Below the pieces are notes generated by a model. It had not been told where the DNA came from. It saw only the letters and a program-made list of their open reading frames with translations, and ran no database searches. A stretch of DNA of 63,075 nt, the filler included, from Choristocarpus tenellus KU-1152 (taxonomy: Eukaryota; Protista; Phaeophyceae), in assembly GCA_964200185.2 (NCBI GenBank). It is 11 parts of 11 records of this genome, joined end to end, with 100 filler letters (N's around TTAATTAATTAA, not from the genome) between each part and the next. Parts side by side here need not be neighbours in the genome. Positions count along the whole stretch, not along the records: positions 33,061 to 41,517 come from CAXNAD020004686.1; 10 more parts are not named here. One strand, given 5' to 3'. Below are positions 32,961-42,243 of the stretch, piece after piece. Numbering within the stretch: the stretch's first letter is position 1; each line of letters begins with the position of its first letter. The position numbers and the translations under genes were made by a program.

Positions 32961-33607
32961 NNNNNNNNNNNNNNNNNNNNNNNNNNNNNNNNNNNNNNNN
33001 NNNNTTAATTAATTAANNNNNNNNNNNNNNNNNNNNNNNNNNNNNNNNNNNNNNNNNNNNGGATTTGGGGCAACTTTTGGGGGTGTTGGGGGTGTTGGGG
33101 GTGGTGTGATGTTGGAATATAGGGCAGTGAGTATATGAAGTCGGCTGTATGGTGGTGTGTTTTGAGGTGTTGAGGTGTACGGCTGAATGATGTATGTCTC
33201 GGTTAGGTTGGTAGAATGATGGCTGTTGACTGACTGGTGGAATAGACAGGCCTGTGTTTGAATGTGTGTTTAAATGTGTGTGTGTGTGTGGCTTTCAAGG
33301 AGAGGGAAGAATAGCCTTGAAGTGTTGCTGTATGACTTGAAAGGGTATGCTCACCTAATCTATATTCTGTGATACTGATTCTGTGATACTGTTTTTGGCT
33401 GTGATACTCGATAGCCATGAAGGGTGCTATATGTATGAAGGGTGCTATATGTAGTTTCTAAATCAACTGTCTGTGTTTGTTGTTAAATTTGTTGTTACAT
33501 TTGTTTTTAAATAAGGATCATTTTTTGTTTTTGTCGTGACACCTTTTGACTGACTCCTCAAGATATTTACATAAGATATTACTTGACTGACTGTAAATAT
33601 CTTGCAG

Positions 33608-36600
33608 GATGAGGACTTTGTGGAGCAGCTATCCAGTCAAATGGATGCCCTCAGGGGTCGGGAGCTGCCTGGTTTCATGTCAGCGCAATCATTCTACATG
33701 TTTATGGCACAATATGTGGAGGCTTGGAGGGACCCTGCTAGGGTTGCAGCCACTGAGGTGTGAGGATTGGGGTGGGTGGAGGAATGGGGATAGTGGATAG
33801 GAAGCACTGTGTTCTTGCCCAGTTTTGAATGACATCAATGTGGAAGAACTCAAGGGAAAATATGCCGTGATGGTTGATGGTCTGCTTCCCTCTTTGTTGG
33901 TGCACCTATCAAATTCTGAGAATCTGCTGGTAGAGGTAATGTCCTCTGATGTCTTTGCATGTTCATCTTTCAATGACATGTGATGCCAATACCAAGGTGA
34001 TGCAATGGTCATGTCTGAGGAGAAAGCACTGAAGAAATTACCCTCTTCTCTGCTCCTCCTCCTCAATCCTTTTTGTGCATATATTGCATTACTGCAATTC
34101 TACTTTCCCTCAGCTGTTTAATCACCTACTATCAGGGATCTCAGGGTGTTCTTGTCTAGACCCTTATCATTGGTATGAATGTGAATTACTTCAATCAACC
34201 TTGCAACTTCTTGTTAACAATATCATTGTTTTGAACTTCTTGTTAACAATATCATTGTTTTGAATCGCCAGGTCTCTTCTGTTCGGGCCTATCCCCAACA
34301 GCAACATACTTGTTGGGATTGGTGGATGTTTTAACTCTTGCTAAGAACAGTTCCTGCCTGTTCCATCAACACTGGGTCTGCCCCTCCTGACCCTAACCCT
34401 AGGTCCTGTCCTGCCCCTTCCCCTCCACCTTGCACCGATGTGACTGTAAGGTGCGTAGCCTAAGCCTTGAGGTGGCTACAAGACTGTTGGATGTGTTGGT
34501 GCTGCAGTACCCGGCCCTCAAGGAGGCGGTGAGGGCTGTGGCAGGTTCTGTAATGGAGGAGGCTTATGAGGGGGCTTTGGAGGAGGTTGATGACCTGCTT
34601 TCCAAGGAGAAAGACCCTTTCACAGTGAGTGATTTGTTCTATATATAGATAGGACTGGAGTAGAACAGATGGGTTTCCGGTATACTCTGTGTACCCAATT
34701 TGTGGACTACTGTTTATTGTTGAAGTTGGGGTTAGATTGAGGTTGGAGTTATGGGTAGAGGTGTTTGGAGGGGTGTGGTTTGGTGTTGGGTCTAAACTGA
34801 CTTGAGCATGTAAGGTAGGTACTAATTGGACTAGTGGTTTGTCTGGAGAGGAGTTTTTGGTTGCTGGGGATTGTGTATGTGTGGGTATTTCATAGGTGTG
34901 GGGGAGATGAATGTAGTTTAGTTTGTTGTGTTAGTGTTGTTGAATTGGGGTAAAAGAGGAGGGGGAAGGGTGTATGGAATGGAGGATGGATGTTGTTTTA
35001 AGTATCACGTGAGATGTCTCAATTCAGTTTGACTTTGCTGCTGCACATCTCAGTTTATTGTACACAAACGCACTTAGCTACATTACTACCAAAGGAGGAT
35101 TCAGACCTTTCCCACTACCTTCTATCCACTGCTGTTGGTTGATGATTCTCACATACCTGGAGCTAGATTATTTAATGAAGTTCTTCAACTAGTCTATATT
35201 TAACCCTAACCCTTCAACTAGTCTGTGACCGTCTTGACCTATGTGTAATTTTGCATACTGATGAGAAATCTGCAGTTGTACATAAAATGATACATGGCAC
35301 ATCTCATGGGTTAGGGTTAGGGTTAGGCTTTGGCAACCTTACCGTGCCCCCTGACTTAGTTGTTTGTCCCTCTGCCTGGTGACACCTTTTTGAGGTTGAA
35401 TTTGGGATATTTTAGGTAGACGTGAGATTTGTATCTTAGCCTTATTTTTGTCTCAGTCATGCTTGTTGGGTTGCAGCTGAAATGGAGAAGTTTCCCCCTA
35501 AATCTCAGGAGGAAAAGTGGTCTACTGTACAGGTTGACTTTTATTTTTTTCTGGCACGGAATGAGAAGTTACAAAAAATAAGAAGTTCCAAGATTTTTAA
35601 TTTTTTGTGTGAACTAGTCGATGTAGAACCCCCCCTCCCCCTTGTTGAACTCATACCCTGATCTCGTCTGCAACACATTTGAAACTACTTATATATATAT
35701 ATTATAGTTACTTTGAGAATGGCACTTTGCAATGTGTTTGTTTTTTATTTGTGTTAGTGGTGATGGAGTTATCCATCCTTGACTCTTTCCCCTTTTGGCA
35801 GATCAATGATTTCCTGGAACAACACATCAACAAGCTTCGCTACGATAGGTTTGAACAGGTGACAGGAAGGCGATGCTGTTGAGTGGGGTATGTATGTTGT
35901 ATGGTGTGTTCTGATGACCACTGTGTGTGTATTTCAAATGGAGAGACTCTTCCAGAGGTAGTCACTTCATGTTCATCTTTTGCACCTTCAAGTTTGCTGG
36001 ATTCATTAGAGTGGTTAGGTGAGGGTTTGTGTGGGGTGAATGTTCCATGCATCCATTGAGCATACAGAAATAGGGTATACCCTGTCCACCATGTTTCGTA
36101 CGTAAGTTTGAAATTTTGAACTAGTGGCAGAGTAGTTCCGCATTGGTATGTAAGGGCTCTTGTGTCTTTGTGATGGGTTCTGAGTATGTGCCTTGGCTTG
36201 GGGACCACCCTTCTTACCAAATGGACAAATGGACAAGTGATACTCACTTCGATACTCACTTTGATACTCACTTCATGTCGGTAGGAAGTTCTACACAAGC
36301 ATCTTGCCTGTCCTTGCCAGTATGTCCAGGGGTGTGTGAGTAGTTTGATACAGAAGTAGTTTTATAACAGGTGATGAAATGGGTTGGTTGCTTAACTTGT
36401 ACCCCATGAACCTGCTGCTGTGGGACCTTCCAAATTCCATTCACAACGTTGCTTTAGCTCTTGCATGTATTCTTTGTTAATAGTTTTGTTGTGCACTATC
36501 CCAGCACTGTTTGCCTTCCCAGCCCTCCATGCTTTCTACTATAATGCTCCATTTTGATTTTTTTATTCTTTGTTTTGATCTTTTACCCATTCCCCATGGT

Positions 36601-39600
36601 GCTGTGGTGTGCCCCATTTCAATATTGTTTGTATTATTAACCCAGGCGGTGCAGCAGTCCTTTGAGAATATCAAAACTGAACCAGAGAGTTGGATAGGTG
36701 CCAAGGAGGAGGCAGGAAGCTTTTTACGTCAGTGGTATCGAACCACTCATGGGGTTAACAGTTTCAGTAATGCAGAGGTGGGGGACCTTACTCTCTTTTC
36801 TTCTATGGCATTGATATTTTTGCTGTATGTGTGTGATGTTGCTTTGTGTATTTTTGCTGTATGTAATGCTGTATCTTTCCCCTCGAGGACTTTGTCCCTT
36901 TTTGTGTATTTTTTTTGTGAGAAGGAATCAATGCTTCCAACCTTTTTGATACACAAAAATAAGATTACAAATACACTCTTTGTGTATACTCTTGTGTATT
37001 TCATACACTGTTTCCATTCAAGTAGGCATGTAGGTGTTTAATAGTATCAAATAGCACAGGCTTCCCCCCCCCACCCCCATGAAAAGAAACCCAACTATGC
37101 TTGACCTTGTGGGAATAGGTGTTGATGATATATTGTCTCTGTGAATTGCTTGACTGCCTTTTTTTCCCTCCTTTTAAAATTTAGGTATGTAGCTCACATT
37201 TTGCAGGTCAGGAGACAGAAAATTAAAAATAGACGAATGAAAACCTGTACAGGTATCCCAAATTTCGCTTTGAGTAGGTTTCATCTGAATCTGGCTGCAT
37301 TTGAGCTCTTGTTTTGTCTCTATTCTTCAATGTGGATAGCCTCAACAGTGGGATGAAAGAATAAGAATAACCTGTCTCAATAAGGGCTGGAAGATACATA
37401 CGTTGTCACTAACAAGCCTCATCATAGGAGAGTAGGCATCCTAAGAGTGGGGGATAGAAGTGAGGGTCTTTCGCTTGGCTTGGTGGGTATGGTGTAATAA
37501 GAGTGGAATTTTTTGAGGAGGTATTTTGTTTGGTCTGCTCTGTGTGTGTGTAAATATGGTTGTTCTTTTTGTTGAGAGCAAACTGTAAATGTGGTTATAC
37601 AATGTTCTCAGGACATGTCGGCAATTCTGGAAGCATACTGGTTGTTGGCGGCGAAGAGATTTGTGGACAATGTGTGCATGACTCTCGATAAGAAGATTAT
37701 GGGAACTTTGGCAAGCCGTATGCAGGGTGAGTCAGAAGGGCAGACAATGATAGCAATGGCATCAGTACTAAATGTTATTTCAATAGTGTTGGTACTAGAT
37801 AGAAATAAATAATAGTATTAGTACTAAATAGAAATACAATGATGGTTGAGTAAATAGTTGACAATGATAGCCAATGAAGACTATGAATGTTGAGAATGAT
37901 AACCTACAATGTTGGTCGGTGAGTGTAATGGTAAGTAATTGTGAACAATGACAGAGGAAGTCAGTGGGGAGAATGGAGAGAGTAAGGAGGAGTGCAGTCG
38001 AGCACCTCAAAAGGGATGGGTGCATGGATGGATTGACGAGGGGGGGAGGGAAGTGTTTGCTTCATTTAAAGTGTTTTCATCTAAAGTGTTTTCTTTTTCT
38101 TCATCTCTGAAATGATTGCCCTCGATAATCTGTAATGATTCTCCTTTCAAGTAGCTTCCAACCCTCTTTTTGTTTTTATACCCAACAAGACTGTCACACA
38201 ACCCACTTTTTAGTTGCTGCCTTGATGATTCAACCAGCTGAGCACTGTAATGTTTATTGGGCTGCGTTCCACTTTGCTTCAATTGTGCACTATTTTTAGG
38301 GTTGTATGTGCTGAGGAGTGGAATGCCTCTAGTGAAGTAGTATCATTTTGACTTGTTTGATTTGTAGATGAACTCTCTAGTGAAGTAGTATCATTTTGAC
38401 TTGTTTGATTTGTAAATGATCTCTCTAGTGAAGTAGGGAGGTAAGTAGGCGTGTTAGTATGCACTTCGGTGTTTTTGTTTAGTTGAAGTATCATCTTTAT
38501 TCTAATTATCTTTTTAATACCATGTGGACTGTTCAGTAATTACCTCTACAGCAGATTTTTACTTGGAGTGATACAAGGTGTCCCTTTCCTTGTTCTTGAC
38601 ATTGCAGTATGCATTCTCCTGAATTTTATTATTATTATTATTATTATTATAATTTTCCACTGTTCCCTTGTTGTTCTCAGAGGAGTGCTATCGATTTGTG
38701 CATGACGATGAGAAATTGGCCAGGTTCTTTCAAGAGGACGCAAAACTGGTTGTGCGTAAGAAAGAGCTTGTTGAGAAGAGAGATCGCCTCAGCAAGGCCA
38801 ATGCTGCCATGGCCAACATACAGGTATCAACACATATTGGCCTCTTTGAATGGGATGTGCATGGACACTGGCTTTGTAGAACACCTTACCGTAAGGGTCA
38901 TGGATCAAAGTTCACATGACATCAAGATTCCAGTTTCTCTTGTGCAGAGTAGGACATGGACTTCACTGGCTTAACTCTTTATTGACGGAATATTATATTA
39001 CATGTTGACAGAATAAGGTATGAGTTGTCTTCTGTGACTGCACGAACTATGTAGTTTCTTTGTGTTACTATTGATGGTACTGATGATAGTACTCTTTCAT
39101 ACCCATGGACCGGAAATTAGTGCTCCGAAAGCAGGGCTGTAACCTATTGATGCATCTCTAAACTACAGTTACCTTAAATGTGCTGTGTGCTGAGGGCAAC
39201 CCTGACTTTATTGCAGTATATCAGAGGCGAACTGTGCTGTGAGGTTTAGATAGACTGTTTGTCTCCTCATGTGATGACTGCTACTTATCCATTTATACCT
39301 TGCTCACTGAAGGATTGAAACACTCCTTATCATTACAACATGAAATACTACAACGTAGTTGTAGAGCTATTGGTAGCTGTATAGTACTGAAACTTCTTAG
39401 CACTGGATACCTACTACCACTAGTGCTAGTGGTATTTACACTTTGTACTCTTAGGACGGAACTTCATGGAAATACTGTGGATTGCAGAGAGTTTACTACT
39501 CATTGCTTGAAGCCATGTTTTGGAAAAATTTAGGTGCTGAAGATAATGTACTCTTCTTTGAACATCCCTTGCACTTGTTGGGAGTGGGTTTTGCCCCCCC

Positions 39601-41045
39601 TTTTGGGTGTGGTGCTGCTTGTTGCCCTGCTATGTAACTGACGAAACCCCCCAGCTGCGGAGTGCCGTTTGATAATGCTAGTTTCACTGTAGCACATTTT
39701 TTGCAGTGTATTTGCACCCATTGTGGATAGGGTTAGGGTTGTGAACATCTTAGTGTCGGTTATATACTAGATAGAGTGAAGTTCTAGATGAATGGGGTTA
39801 ATGGTCCTGATAACGCCTTCGTAGAAGTTGAAAAAAAAGCTCTTGTATAGTCTTGTTGTGTAAAGCATTGTATGCTTCCTTGCACCATTTCCACATGAAC
39901 ATTATTTCACATGATCACTCACAATGCCTCCTTTTCAATCTGCTCTCAAAGGGCACCTGCATTTTTATCCATACTCTTGAAGTCAAGGTGTCAGCAGGGT
40001 TACTTCTAGACTTTCCACACTCTGCATCCACTCCTCCGAATGATGCAACTCAACTCCCCCATGTAACGGACCCTCTCTCAATTTGTCTGACATTTGTTCT
40101 TGTGATTTTGTGCAACCCACTTAATGCACTCAACTTCTCTATCTTATCACTTGTGTGTTTATTGTGTTGGGGTGGGTTAATAACAGGTACGTAGAAGTGG
40201 TACTCAACAGGTTAGGGTGACGGTGACAGCTGGACCAATAGGTCTTGGCCTTAGCTTGGCAGAGGAGAACAACAGATGCGTTGTCAGGGGGTTCAGGCCC
40301 ATGCCAGATGGGCAGAGAAATCCAGGACAGGCAAGCTACAAGGAAAGGGTGATATGCGATCACTTGATGACTGGTCGTGGGTGATTGTATCTGGCTTGTT
40401 TGTGGATTTTGTGAGGTTTGAGTATACTATGCTATTAATGCAGCATTGTATCACATTCTATGTATCACATTGCATGTATCACAGGTTGCTCAAACAGGAT
40501 AGAGGGTTGTGCGCTCATGTGTCTACCCTGACATGTGTGGAGGTTTACATTATGTGGTCAGCAGTTAATTTAGTTAATTTTCTCATGTCTTGATTTTTGA
40601 CTGAATTACTGAATTACTGATTTTTTATGTGTGTGCCTTGGTCATTGTCTAACATTGCCTTTTTTGTGTTTGTTGGTGAATATGATACTTCGTAGTACCA
40701 TAAGATGTTATTACTTTGGTGTCCATTAATTGCTTTACAATATTAGGCAAGGTATGTCCAGTTCTATGTGCCCTCTCACTGTACATGGATCTAGATAATG
40801 TTTGGTCGCTAATGTATGGTCACAAGCCTGTGCCAAGAGACTCACAATCAACTCATTTCCCCTCCCCCCTCACCTTCATCCCAAATGGTCAATTTGTTCT
40901 GGCATTACAGGAGGCGGGTGTACAGCTTGGGGATGTTCTAGAGCAGCTTGATGGCTTGCACTTGGGGTCGTTTCAGGAAGCTATTGAACGCCTGAAGCAG
41001 CGCAGGGGTACTGTAGTGTTGACACTCTTACGAGAAAAGAGTTGA
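33608..41045 (+). CDS. Mx/dynamin-like GTPase, C-terminal half (stalk + GED) with C-terminal PDZ domain; 5' incomplete
   Basis: Exons 33608-33757, 34451-34624, 35802-35858, 36646-36777, 37612-37726, 38681-38823, 40187-40330 and 40911-41045 join in frame. Motifs RGRELPGF and E..PFT.ND (middle domain), AYWLLAAKRFVDNV and R..L...RDRL..A (GED), then VTVTAGPIGLGLSL...VVRGF...NPGQ|EAGVQLGDVLEQLDG...AIERLK...VVLTLLR (PDZ). Confidence 0.88.
34206..34264. repeat. 29-bp tandem duplication (intronic)
   Basis: aacttcttgttaacaatatcattgttttg x2. Confidence 0.9.
38327..38436. repeat. 48-bp tandem repeat, 2.3 copies (intronic)
   Basis: Units start at 38327, 38375 and 38423. Confidence 0.9.
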
Positions 41046-42243
41046 GGAATGGAGGTGCCATGCCAACTGGGAAGATCTTAATTCCCAAAGATCTGTAGAT
41101 GAGGATGGAATCATTGGTGAACTTAATGAAGGGGTTGATAGGCCTGGACAGGGGTGTAGTTCGGATGTAACTGCACTTGATTTACGTGAGGGTCTAGACC
41201 TGTCATTCAGTGAGGCATTATATGGTGTATTAGTTTCCCATTGAACAAGCAAGCAGTGTGGCAGACGAAAAAAAATGTGGGTAATTAAATATGTTTTGAT
41301 GTGTTCAATATGTGAGGTAGTCTCTGCCTTGAAGTGGAATGTGAGTGTTCGTGGGCTGAGCACACATTGAACATTGTTGTTACTCTGATCAAGGACATAG
41401 TGTGTGTATGTCTCTGTATAATTACTCACACACCACTGTACAACTTGGCAGTTTTTTCTCCTCTTCCTCCTAATAACAGGGGATTCGCAAAATTGAGGAT
41501 GGAGCGGGACTATGAGGNNNNNNNNNNNNNNNNNNNNNNNNNNNNNNNNNNNNNNNNNNNNTTAATTAATTAANNNNNNNNNNNNNNNNNNNNNNNNNNN
41601 NNNNNNNNNNNNNNNNNGGGGGGGGGGGCTGATGATGACTAACCCAGGAGAACGTCAATCTCCGTCAACCAAAAAAACCGGCAGGAAGGTACGGCGATAC
41701 CAAAAAAGTAAATTACTGACCTAATAAGGTATACCACAGTACAGTCAATTGATTCAATTCCTTACACCATCATAACATTATCGAGGAGTAAAACCGGCAC
41801 CTAATTTAAATAGCTGATCACACACTGCTCGTAGAGCTACGTGGTGCTACCAACACTGGCTCTTAGCACGAATAAGCATACTCCTCTTCATTAAATCCAT
41901 GCCAAAAGTTGGTGGCAAGCTCAAACATTAAGGGAGTCTTGCTTCTTAGAAAACGAAACGGTGGCAACGGTTGTTGTCCACAGTTTTGTGCGTTAGTGAC
42001 TGGGTATCACATAAATCAAGGCCATCAGTTCACATGTACAATCTGGCTCTCAGATAGACCACTACAGATTAGAGGTGGCAAAAAAAAGCAGGACCCAACC
42101 ATCCTCATCACGCAAAAATTTCACTGACAAGAAATCGCTTTATCATCACCCGTTCTATCTTGACTCAGAAGGGTGAAAAGGGTGAGTGGGCCTCATCAGC
42201 AATCATGCCTGCTTCCAGCACAATAATATCAACACCTCCTCAC

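Follow-up and report, generated by a model that had tools for sequence, protein, structure and literature searches.

Positions 33608 to 41045 of a joined stretch of DNA from the brown alga Choristocarpus tenellus KU-1152 (63,075 nucleotides, filler included, referred to here as the window) contain, on the + strand, the final eight exons of an Mx-like dynamin-superfamily gene, and these encode the rear of the stalk and the GED, followed by a complete PDZ domain. One spliced mRNA runs from the last GED helix via a 7-residue linker into the PDZ domain. The sequence analyzed was the piece at 33061-41517 of this stretch (G+C content, 37 to 53%), which is without a long open reading frame (ORF) but carries a run of short + strand ORFs with dynamin-like peptides; the exons for the GTPase domain and the front of the stalk, which form the 5' part of the gene, lie outside this piece. 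Exons were queried singly in profile and sequence searches, and natural orthologues from the databases (P0009 and P0053) were used as proxies for the whole protein.

Gene structure and transcript

An earlier note, made from the sequence alone, had proposed eight in-frame exons (A to H) encoding an Mx-type stalk and GED followed by a PDZ domain. This proposal was borne out by the splice sites, by joints in the sequencing run X2, by colinearity with P0053 and by scores against Mx proteins. Inspection of the splice sites placed all eight exons at the proposed outer coordinates, with AG acceptors throughout and GT donors in every case except for one GC donor. The E/F junction was the only one with a nonzero phase, as exon E ends in phase 1 with one base of a split codon, and all others were in phase 0. 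The diagnostic peptides RGRELPGF, AYWLLAAKRFVDNV, GLGLSL, NPGQ/EAGVQLGD and VVLTLLR were all located. Exon G was absent from the ORF track, as had been remarked, because its ORF (40217-40384) extends for only 55 codons past the first start-type codon. The predicted protein stops 3 residues past the PDZ domain.

Three sequencing runs from one study of the same organism (X1, X2 and X3), none of which was recorded as RNA, were mapped on 35700-41517. X1 and X3 resembled genomic DNA, with an even depth, long contigs across introns and zero exon-exon joints. X2 instead resembled RNA, with a depth of 230 to 1790 in bins that held exons versus 5 to 44 in purely intronic bins. After shifting of the cuts, X2 contigs contained GT..AG joints at 35858^36646, 36777^37612, 37726^38681 and 38823^40187. 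A further joint at 40330^40911 (seen at 40326/40907) had a cut that was ambiguous over 5 letters, and GC..AG was the sole recognized splice type possible. Both of the junctions that the earlier note had singled out for an RNA check, those on either side of exon G, were hence present. The depths of the joints were alike along the gene, ranging from 998 to 1656 with the highest value at 38823^40187, and this similarity indicated that the PDZ exons are within the main transcript. As the joined form was missing from the DNA-like X1 and X3 runs, a processed DNA copy was excluded. One X2 contig had a loose end at 35802 that was identical to the last 30 letters of exon B; A/B was the only junction without transcript support in X2. 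Another X2 contig, at a depth of 25, spanned the entire F/G intron (38797-40212) versus a depth of 1656 for the spliced joint, which fits a minor unspliced precursor. The F/G intron showed no alternative exon among the X2 contigs.

The exons were colinear and contiguous on P0053, a homologue encoded by one uninterrupted ORF of 753 amino acids, with exon A (66% identity to residues 399-445) ending at residue 445 and exon B beginning at residue 446. Exons A to D aligned in order and without gaps to P0053 399-569, and P0053 matched Dynamin_M with an E value of 1.2e-41, so that these four exons are assigned to the stalk. Profile searches with single exons recovered the right families exon by exon, as the earlier note had predicted for Dynamin_M, GED and PDZ, but each match fell below its Pfam cut-off. 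Exon A matched Dynamin_M with an E value of 0.0015 (18.2 bits; cut-off, 28.5), exon F matched positions 52-91 of the 92 positions of the GED profile with an E value of 0.0067 (17 bits; cut-off, 21.4), and exon H matched PDZ_6 with an E value of 1.2e-5 (25.4 bits; cut-off, 27). These subthreshold matches were concordant in family but insufficient alone to decide the architecture. A PDZ profile match is nevertheless present in exon H, and other members of the family exceed the cut-off (36.6 bits for P0053 and 38.4 bits for P0124).

Table 1. Exons and other features of the 3' part of the gene, with the corresponding residues of P0053
Feature	Position	Strand	Content	P0053 residues
Exon A	33608-33757	+	Stalk; Mx/dynamin motif RGRELPGF at 33653-33676; AG acceptor, GT donor	399-445
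Exon B	34451-34624	+	Stalk helix; canonical splice sites	446-503
Exon C	35802-35858	+	Stalk; 19 codons	504-521
Exon D	36646-36777	+	Stalk tip with short L4-like loop; beginning of GED region	540-569
Exon E	37612-37726	+	GED core AYWLLAAKRFVDNV; phase 1 end	570-607
Exon F	38681-38823	+	Last GED helix; by homology, third helix of the bundle signaling element (BSE)	609-655
Exon G	40187-40330	+	7-residue linker and first half of PDZ (strands A-C); GLGL carboxylate-binding loop at 40241-40252	674-703
GC-AG intron	40331-40910	+	Divides the PDZ domain	
Exon H, coding part	40911-41045	+	Second half of PDZ (helix A, strands D-E, helix B, strand F); stop codon TGA at 41043-41045	710-751
3' untranslated region	41046 to at least 41502	+	X2 contig record 16 (40907-41502; depth, 1057.7)	

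Several repeats accompany the gene. Short interstitial telomere-like repeats, (TTAGGG)2-3 or the complement, occur within introns at 35301-35330, 39721-39740, 34389-34400 and 35201-35215. In the E/F intron, at 38310-38430 and 38617-38661, there is a tandem duplication of a unit of ~55 bases (ctctagtgaagtag...gatttgta), together with an (ATT)n microsatellite. From ~41472 to the end of the piece, the depth leaps to 24914 in X1 (baseline, ~19) and to 5786 in X3 (region 41468-41517), and many contigs with differing preceding sequences enter at this point, which marks the border of a repeat of very high copy number that lies just past the 3' untranslated region and is interrupted where the piece ends.

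Conservation of the gene and distribution of the architecture

When the ORF surrounding exon H was used in a word search, exon-sized fragments were detected, along with a partial protein of Laminaria digitata (P0008) that joins the equivalents of exons F, G and H. Exon order and strand were the same in a Laminaria contig (L002), in the contig of another relative (L001) and in a contig of Discosporangium mesarthrocarpum (L012), with protein identities of 83 to 100%. Exon A was 96% identical to L012 2821-2970, exon B was 91% identical in L012 and 86% in L001, and exon C was 100% identical in both. For the remaining exons, identities in relatives were 84 to 89% (exon D), 92 to 95% (exon E), 83 to 94% (exon G; three relatives) and 86 to 98% (exon H). 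The annotated Discosporangium model CAM9868270.1 (P0009) showed 84 to 98% identity per exon, and its F/G and G/H junctions are exactly those proposed for Choristocarpus. The GED of this orthologue, which is 92 to 95% identical over exons E and F, scored 27.4 bits, above the cut-off of 21.4. CAM9868270.1 (226 amino acids; contig CAXNAE020004302.1) begins at exon D, and same-strand equivalents of exons A to C lie upstream at L012 2821-4359; the annotated gene is therefore truncated or split. Exons C and D are contiguous in L001 (872-1060), while an intron of 787 bases separates them in the window and an intron is also present in Discosporangium, a difference that represents intron gain or loss inside the group.

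The GC donor after exon G was found also in L001 (2612 onward) and L002 (1220 onward) and hence in three brown-algal genomes, including that of the window. In one species, the ORF (P0004) continues from ...NPGQ into V-S-R, which is compatible with a GT donor at that position. It appears that, owing to this conserved GC-AG intron, the PDZ domain is missed or corrupted in public gene models, and such errors may explain why the architecture went unnoticed. The Laminaria digitata model P0008 has 7 extra residues (ASTGSTL) at the GC-AG intron. In the Ectocarpus sp. CCAP 1310/34 model P0148, homology is lost after ...NPG, and the last exon is seemingly frame-shifted and without a PDZ match.

An exhaustive search with exon A yielded largely exon fragments, together with full-length proteins. 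Within its single ORF, P0053 contains Dynamin_N at residues 36-213 (E value, 2e-37), Dynamin_M at 225-499, GED at 566-653 (3.7e-4) and PDZ_6 at 682-751 (3.9e-9), and the domain scan of this protein indicated that the family is without a PH domain, a proline-rich domain or an insert B. P0053 was present on 16 contigs of about 2.4 to 2.7 kb from many runs. A search with its GED-PDZ region detected the same architecture in Chrysophaeum taylorii (two proteins), Aureoumbra lagunensis, Chrysoparadoxa australica, Tribonema and Heterosigma akashiwo, as well as in MMETSP transcriptomes and environmental assemblies. The search across stramenopiles that the earlier note had advised thus points to an order of Dynamin_N, Dynamin_M, GED and PDZ that, judged from these sequences, is conserved across several ochrophyte classes, and to an old fusion common to brown algae, xanthophytes, raphidophytes and pelagophytes. 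The G-domain motifs GDQSSGKSS, DLPG and TKPD are present in the consensus of an alignment of orthologues (A2); the window's own G-domain exons are outside the piece. One relative, with 94% identity in exon A, has an ORF with Dynamin_N 5 kb upstream on the same strand.

Some close homologues seemed to be without a PDZ domain (P0130, P0132 to P0134, P0136, P0137, P0139, P0141, P0145 and P0146). Either the first half of the PDZ was present or the protein broke off soon after the GED with nonhomologous sequence, and these homologues were rejected as PDZ-less isoforms and read as ORFs that enter introns or contig ends. More distant Mx-like paralogues of ochrophytes (P0072, P0074, P0079 and P0100) are without a PDZ domain. 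Two of these, P0074 (Pelagophyceae sp. CCMP2097; KAJ1460259.1) and P0100 (Heterosigma akashiwo), have long extensions after the GED, one being Ala/Gly rich with GLFG-like repeats and the other comprising ~260 residues without a Pfam match; no Pfam domain was found in either extension. There was a hint that modules have been added repeatedly at the C terminus of such GTPases.

Comparisons with solved structures supported an Mx-like assignment, by similarity of sequence and predicted fold rather than by a tree. In a phmmer search of the PDB, P0053 scored 247 bits with MxB and 242 bits with MxA, 167 bits with the best dynamin chain, 155 to 158 bits with human dynamin-1 and -3 and lower with Vps1 (140 bits), Drp1 (128 bits) and OPA1 (81 bits). 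Foldseek ranked MxB and MxA structures at positions 1 to 4 (5uot, 4whj and then MxA 5gtm) with the AlphaFold2 (AF2) model of P0053, for which the predicted local distance difference test (pLDDT) value was 81.7. The nearest cluster of the Protein Atlas was "Interferon-induced GTP-binding protein Mx" (chordate Mx); the search of the Atlas found plain Mx or GED clusters only, and no large Dynamin-PDZ cluster.

The earlier note had left it undecided whether databases already contain this architecture. They do: it occurs in NCBI, UniRef and MMETSP as unnamed or uncharacterized proteins, and the Choristocarpus gene is not unique. The Mx phylogeny of Langley et al. (2025; PMC11789081) classified proteins by GTPase domain, and its tree file contains the names of Tribonema "Mx2" (KAG5184845.1), Chrysophaeum CTAYLR_000866 and Ectocarpus "Mx2" CBN78192.1. 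A Tribonema "Mx2" protein and CTAYLR_000866 were direct matches in our search, with 99% coverage of the GED-PDZ region, and the stramenopile Mx-like GTPases of that study apparently belong to the same gene family as the window gene. The term "PDZ" was not found in the text or the searched supplements of PMC11789081, and no paper describing a dynamin-PDZ fusion, including in algae, diatoms or brown algae, was found in open-access full text. The architecture is in databases as uncharacterized proteins yet appears to be undescribed in the literature. Langley et al. (2025; PMC11789081) call for work on Mx-like proteins from divergent eukaryotes. As a recognition module, the PDZ domain is well defined and amenable to assay, and the identity of its ligand would directly reveal what this Mx-like polymer targets.

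Fold of the PDZ domain and readings of its function

The proposal that the last two exons form a complete PDZ fold was confirmed by an AF2 model and by Foldseek. The model was made for the Discosporangium orthologue, which is 94 to 98% identical to exons G and H, and had a pLDDT of 86.8 (E13-21, E29-34, E37-43, H53-57, E64-68, H76-85 and E89-97). Its topology was canonical and nonpermuted, with six strands and two helices. The best 50 Foldseek matches listed were all PDZ domains, with NHERF1 PDZ1 first (template modeling [TM] scores of 0.71/0.77 and a root mean square deviation [rmsd] of 2.1) and PSD-95 and Scribble also at the top. A profile of 25 family C termini (alignment A1) matched 109 PDB sequences with E values of ≤0.001, and the best 60 of the 109 all bear PDZ domains; the best matches were site-2 protease (9e-13) and DegQ (5e-10), and Scribble and NHERF1 gave alignments over the full length.

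In A1, the groove residues were conserved at 92 to 100%, against a mean column identity of 44%. L31 and the two glycines of the GLGL loop (G26 and G28) were invariant, and L29, F76, I80 and L83 were conserved at 92 to 96%. The last three of these (Phe, Ile and Leu) fall at helix B positions 1, 5 and 8, where PDZ domains have the lining of their peptide groove. Comparison of the PDZ exons with those of Discosporangium detected 6.5 nonsynonymous differences over 205 sites and 48.5 synonymous differences over 68 sites. Between the window and its relatives, synonymous sites were saturated, nonsynonymous divergence (dN) was 0.03 to 0.13 and the ratio to synonymous divergence (dN/dS) was 0.014 to 0.07 where it could be estimated. 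These substitution patterns indicate that the PDZ exons are genuine coding sequence under strong purifying selection.

The reading that we favor, with slightly better than an even chance of being correct, is that the PDZ domain recruits or regulates the assembling GTPase by binding the C terminus of a conserved and probably cellular partner. The G domain, BSE and stalk would act as they do in Mx proteins and dynamins, with polymerization of the stalks and a conformational change driven by GTP. In Mx proteins and dynamins, the BSE includes the last GED helix, which runs back to the G domain, and the loop at the stalk tip contacts the target or membrane. As the last GED helix packs on the G domain, the PDZ domain would hang at the G-domain/BSE end, opposite the stalk-tip loop. 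In agreement with this placement, the full-length model of P0053 has its last helix at 628-661 and the PDZ domain at 674-750, with a linker of low confidence (658-670) between them. The conserved hydrophobic groove, with Phe at helix B position 1, suggests that the ligand would be a free C terminus with hydrophobic last and third-last residues. Its binding could recruit the GTPase polymer to the partner or gate polymer assembly, and the PDZ domain may in this way fill the role of the PH domains or adaptor proteins of other dynamins. A conserved cellular partner was judged likeliest because the groove is near-invariant, the dN/dS ratio is very low and the architecture is stable across deep lineages.

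Several points weigh against this interpretation or limit it. Many PDZ domains have a basic residue ahead of the GLGF loop, but this residue is not conserved in the family. The mean pairwise identity of the PDZ domain (49%) is below those of the G domain (68%) and the GED (66%), and the brown-algal PDZ domains score slightly below the Pfam cut-off (26.4 and 25.4 versus 27 bits). The identification of X2 as RNA derives from its depth profile and joints and not from its record, and the N-terminal half of the protein in Choristocarpus is deduced from orthologues and the contig of a relative. The proposed mechanism is deduced from fold and conservation.

An antiviral restriction factor, in which the polymer would trap viral components and the PDZ domain would read the C-terminal tails of proteins from large DNA viruses (phaeoviruses and other nucleocytoviruses), either replacing or supplementing the stalk-tip loop, seems unlikely but has several points in its favor. 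The nearest solved relatives are the antiviral proteins MxB and MxA, and the giant-virus hosts Ectocarpus, Heterosigma and pelagophytes such as Aureoumbra possess the family. In MxB, the virus-targeting N-terminal segment likewise emerges at the BSE end. Furthermore, it has been argued that Mx-like lineages, including those of stramenopiles, may be anciently antiviral (Langley et al. 2025; PMC11789081). However, the groove is near-invariant across classes and, with the dN/dS ratio at 0.014 to 0.07 where estimable, the surface proposed for recognition bears no mark of an arms race; the architecture has also been kept across deep lineages without obvious turnover. The spliced contigs are deep in X2, a sample of unspecified infection state, although the depth of contigs is an unreliable guide to expression. 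No infection data for any family member were found in the open-access literature searched. Deep conservation, with dN far under saturated dS, fits a conserved ligand better than a fast arms race but leaves some probability of an antiviral role. By the reasoning of Langley et al. (2025; PMC11789081), the pattern likewise accords better with housekeeping constraint than with an arms race. A more specific version of the antiviral role, in which an early ochrophyte Mx-like GTPase gained a PDZ domain at the BSE end, shortened its stalk-tip loop and became a reader of the C termini of giant-virus capsid or membrane proteins, as a PDZ-guided antiviral polymer that predates interferon, we consider less likely still.

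The PDZ domain could alternatively be a built-in regulator, binding its own or a neighboring subunit and controlling assembly or GTPase activity, or a phosphoinositide-binding membrane anchor in place of a PH domain, as some PDZ domains bind phosphoinositides. The very short 7-residue linker of brown algae, xanthophytes and raphidophytes would keep the PDZ domain close to the G domain and BSE. The family lacks a PH domain and has a short stalk-tip loop; basic residues R17, R41, R44, K84 and R96 are conserved, and the basic residue normally found ahead of the GLGF loop is absent. We regard this possibility as rather improbable, as family C termini are unconserved, ending 2 to 20 residues beyond the last strand, and so provide no conserved self-ligand tail; the linker ranges from 7 to 42 residues across the family, and a length of 40 or more in some members is unlike a fixed intramolecular contact; and the most conserved residues are those of the hydrophobic peptide groove. 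The idea that the fusion is an artefact of reading, with exons G and H being chance ORFs or part of another gene downstream, might be suggested by the long F/G intron (1363 bases), the short exon G under the ORF-list threshold and the non-GT donor of the G/H intron, but is very improbable and contradicted by the F-G and G-H joints in X2 at the depth of the upstream joints, by single ORFs and MMETSP transcripts that hold GED and PDZ together, by retention of the GC donor in three species and by the strong purifying selection on the PDZ exons.

Comparison with PDZ domains, Mx proteins and dynamins

Canonical PDZ domains (NHERF1 PDZ1 [1G9O], Scribble PDZ1 and PSD-95) share with the predicted algal domain the topology, TM scores of 0.7 to 0.77 at an rmsd of ~2 Å and a GLGL at the position of GLGF. 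They differ in having only 16 to 27% identity to the algal PDZ, for which the best profile matches are the PDZ domains of bacterial site-2 proteases and DegP/DegQ. Helix B begins with His in class I PDZ domains but with Phe in the algal family.

Vertebrate Mx proteins (MxA/Mx1 and MxB/Mx2; PDB 3SZR, 4WHJ and 5UOT) match the algal family in domain order (G domain, BSE, four-helix stalk and GED) and in the RGRELPGF motif, and neither group has a PH domain or proline-rich tail. The vertebrate proteins end at the last GED helix, whereas the algal family adds a linker and the PDZ domain. The stalk-tip loop of MxA is long and determines specificity; that of the algal family is short and variable, apparently of only about 8 to 12 residues. 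To our knowledge, algae have no interferon system.

Classical dynamin and Drp1/Dnm1/Vps1 belong to the same superfamily, with a self-assembling stalk and GED, although dynamins and Drp1 scored much lower against P0053 (155 to 167 and 128 bits, respectively) than did Mx proteins. Targeting by an extra module or adaptor is common to these systems, being mediated by the PH domain in dynamin and by receptor proteins for Drp1. The extra module of the algal family is a PDZ domain, located after the GED and not within the stalk tip. The family would also show that the dynamin scaffold can accept a targeting module at the G-domain/BSE end instead of at the stalk tip.

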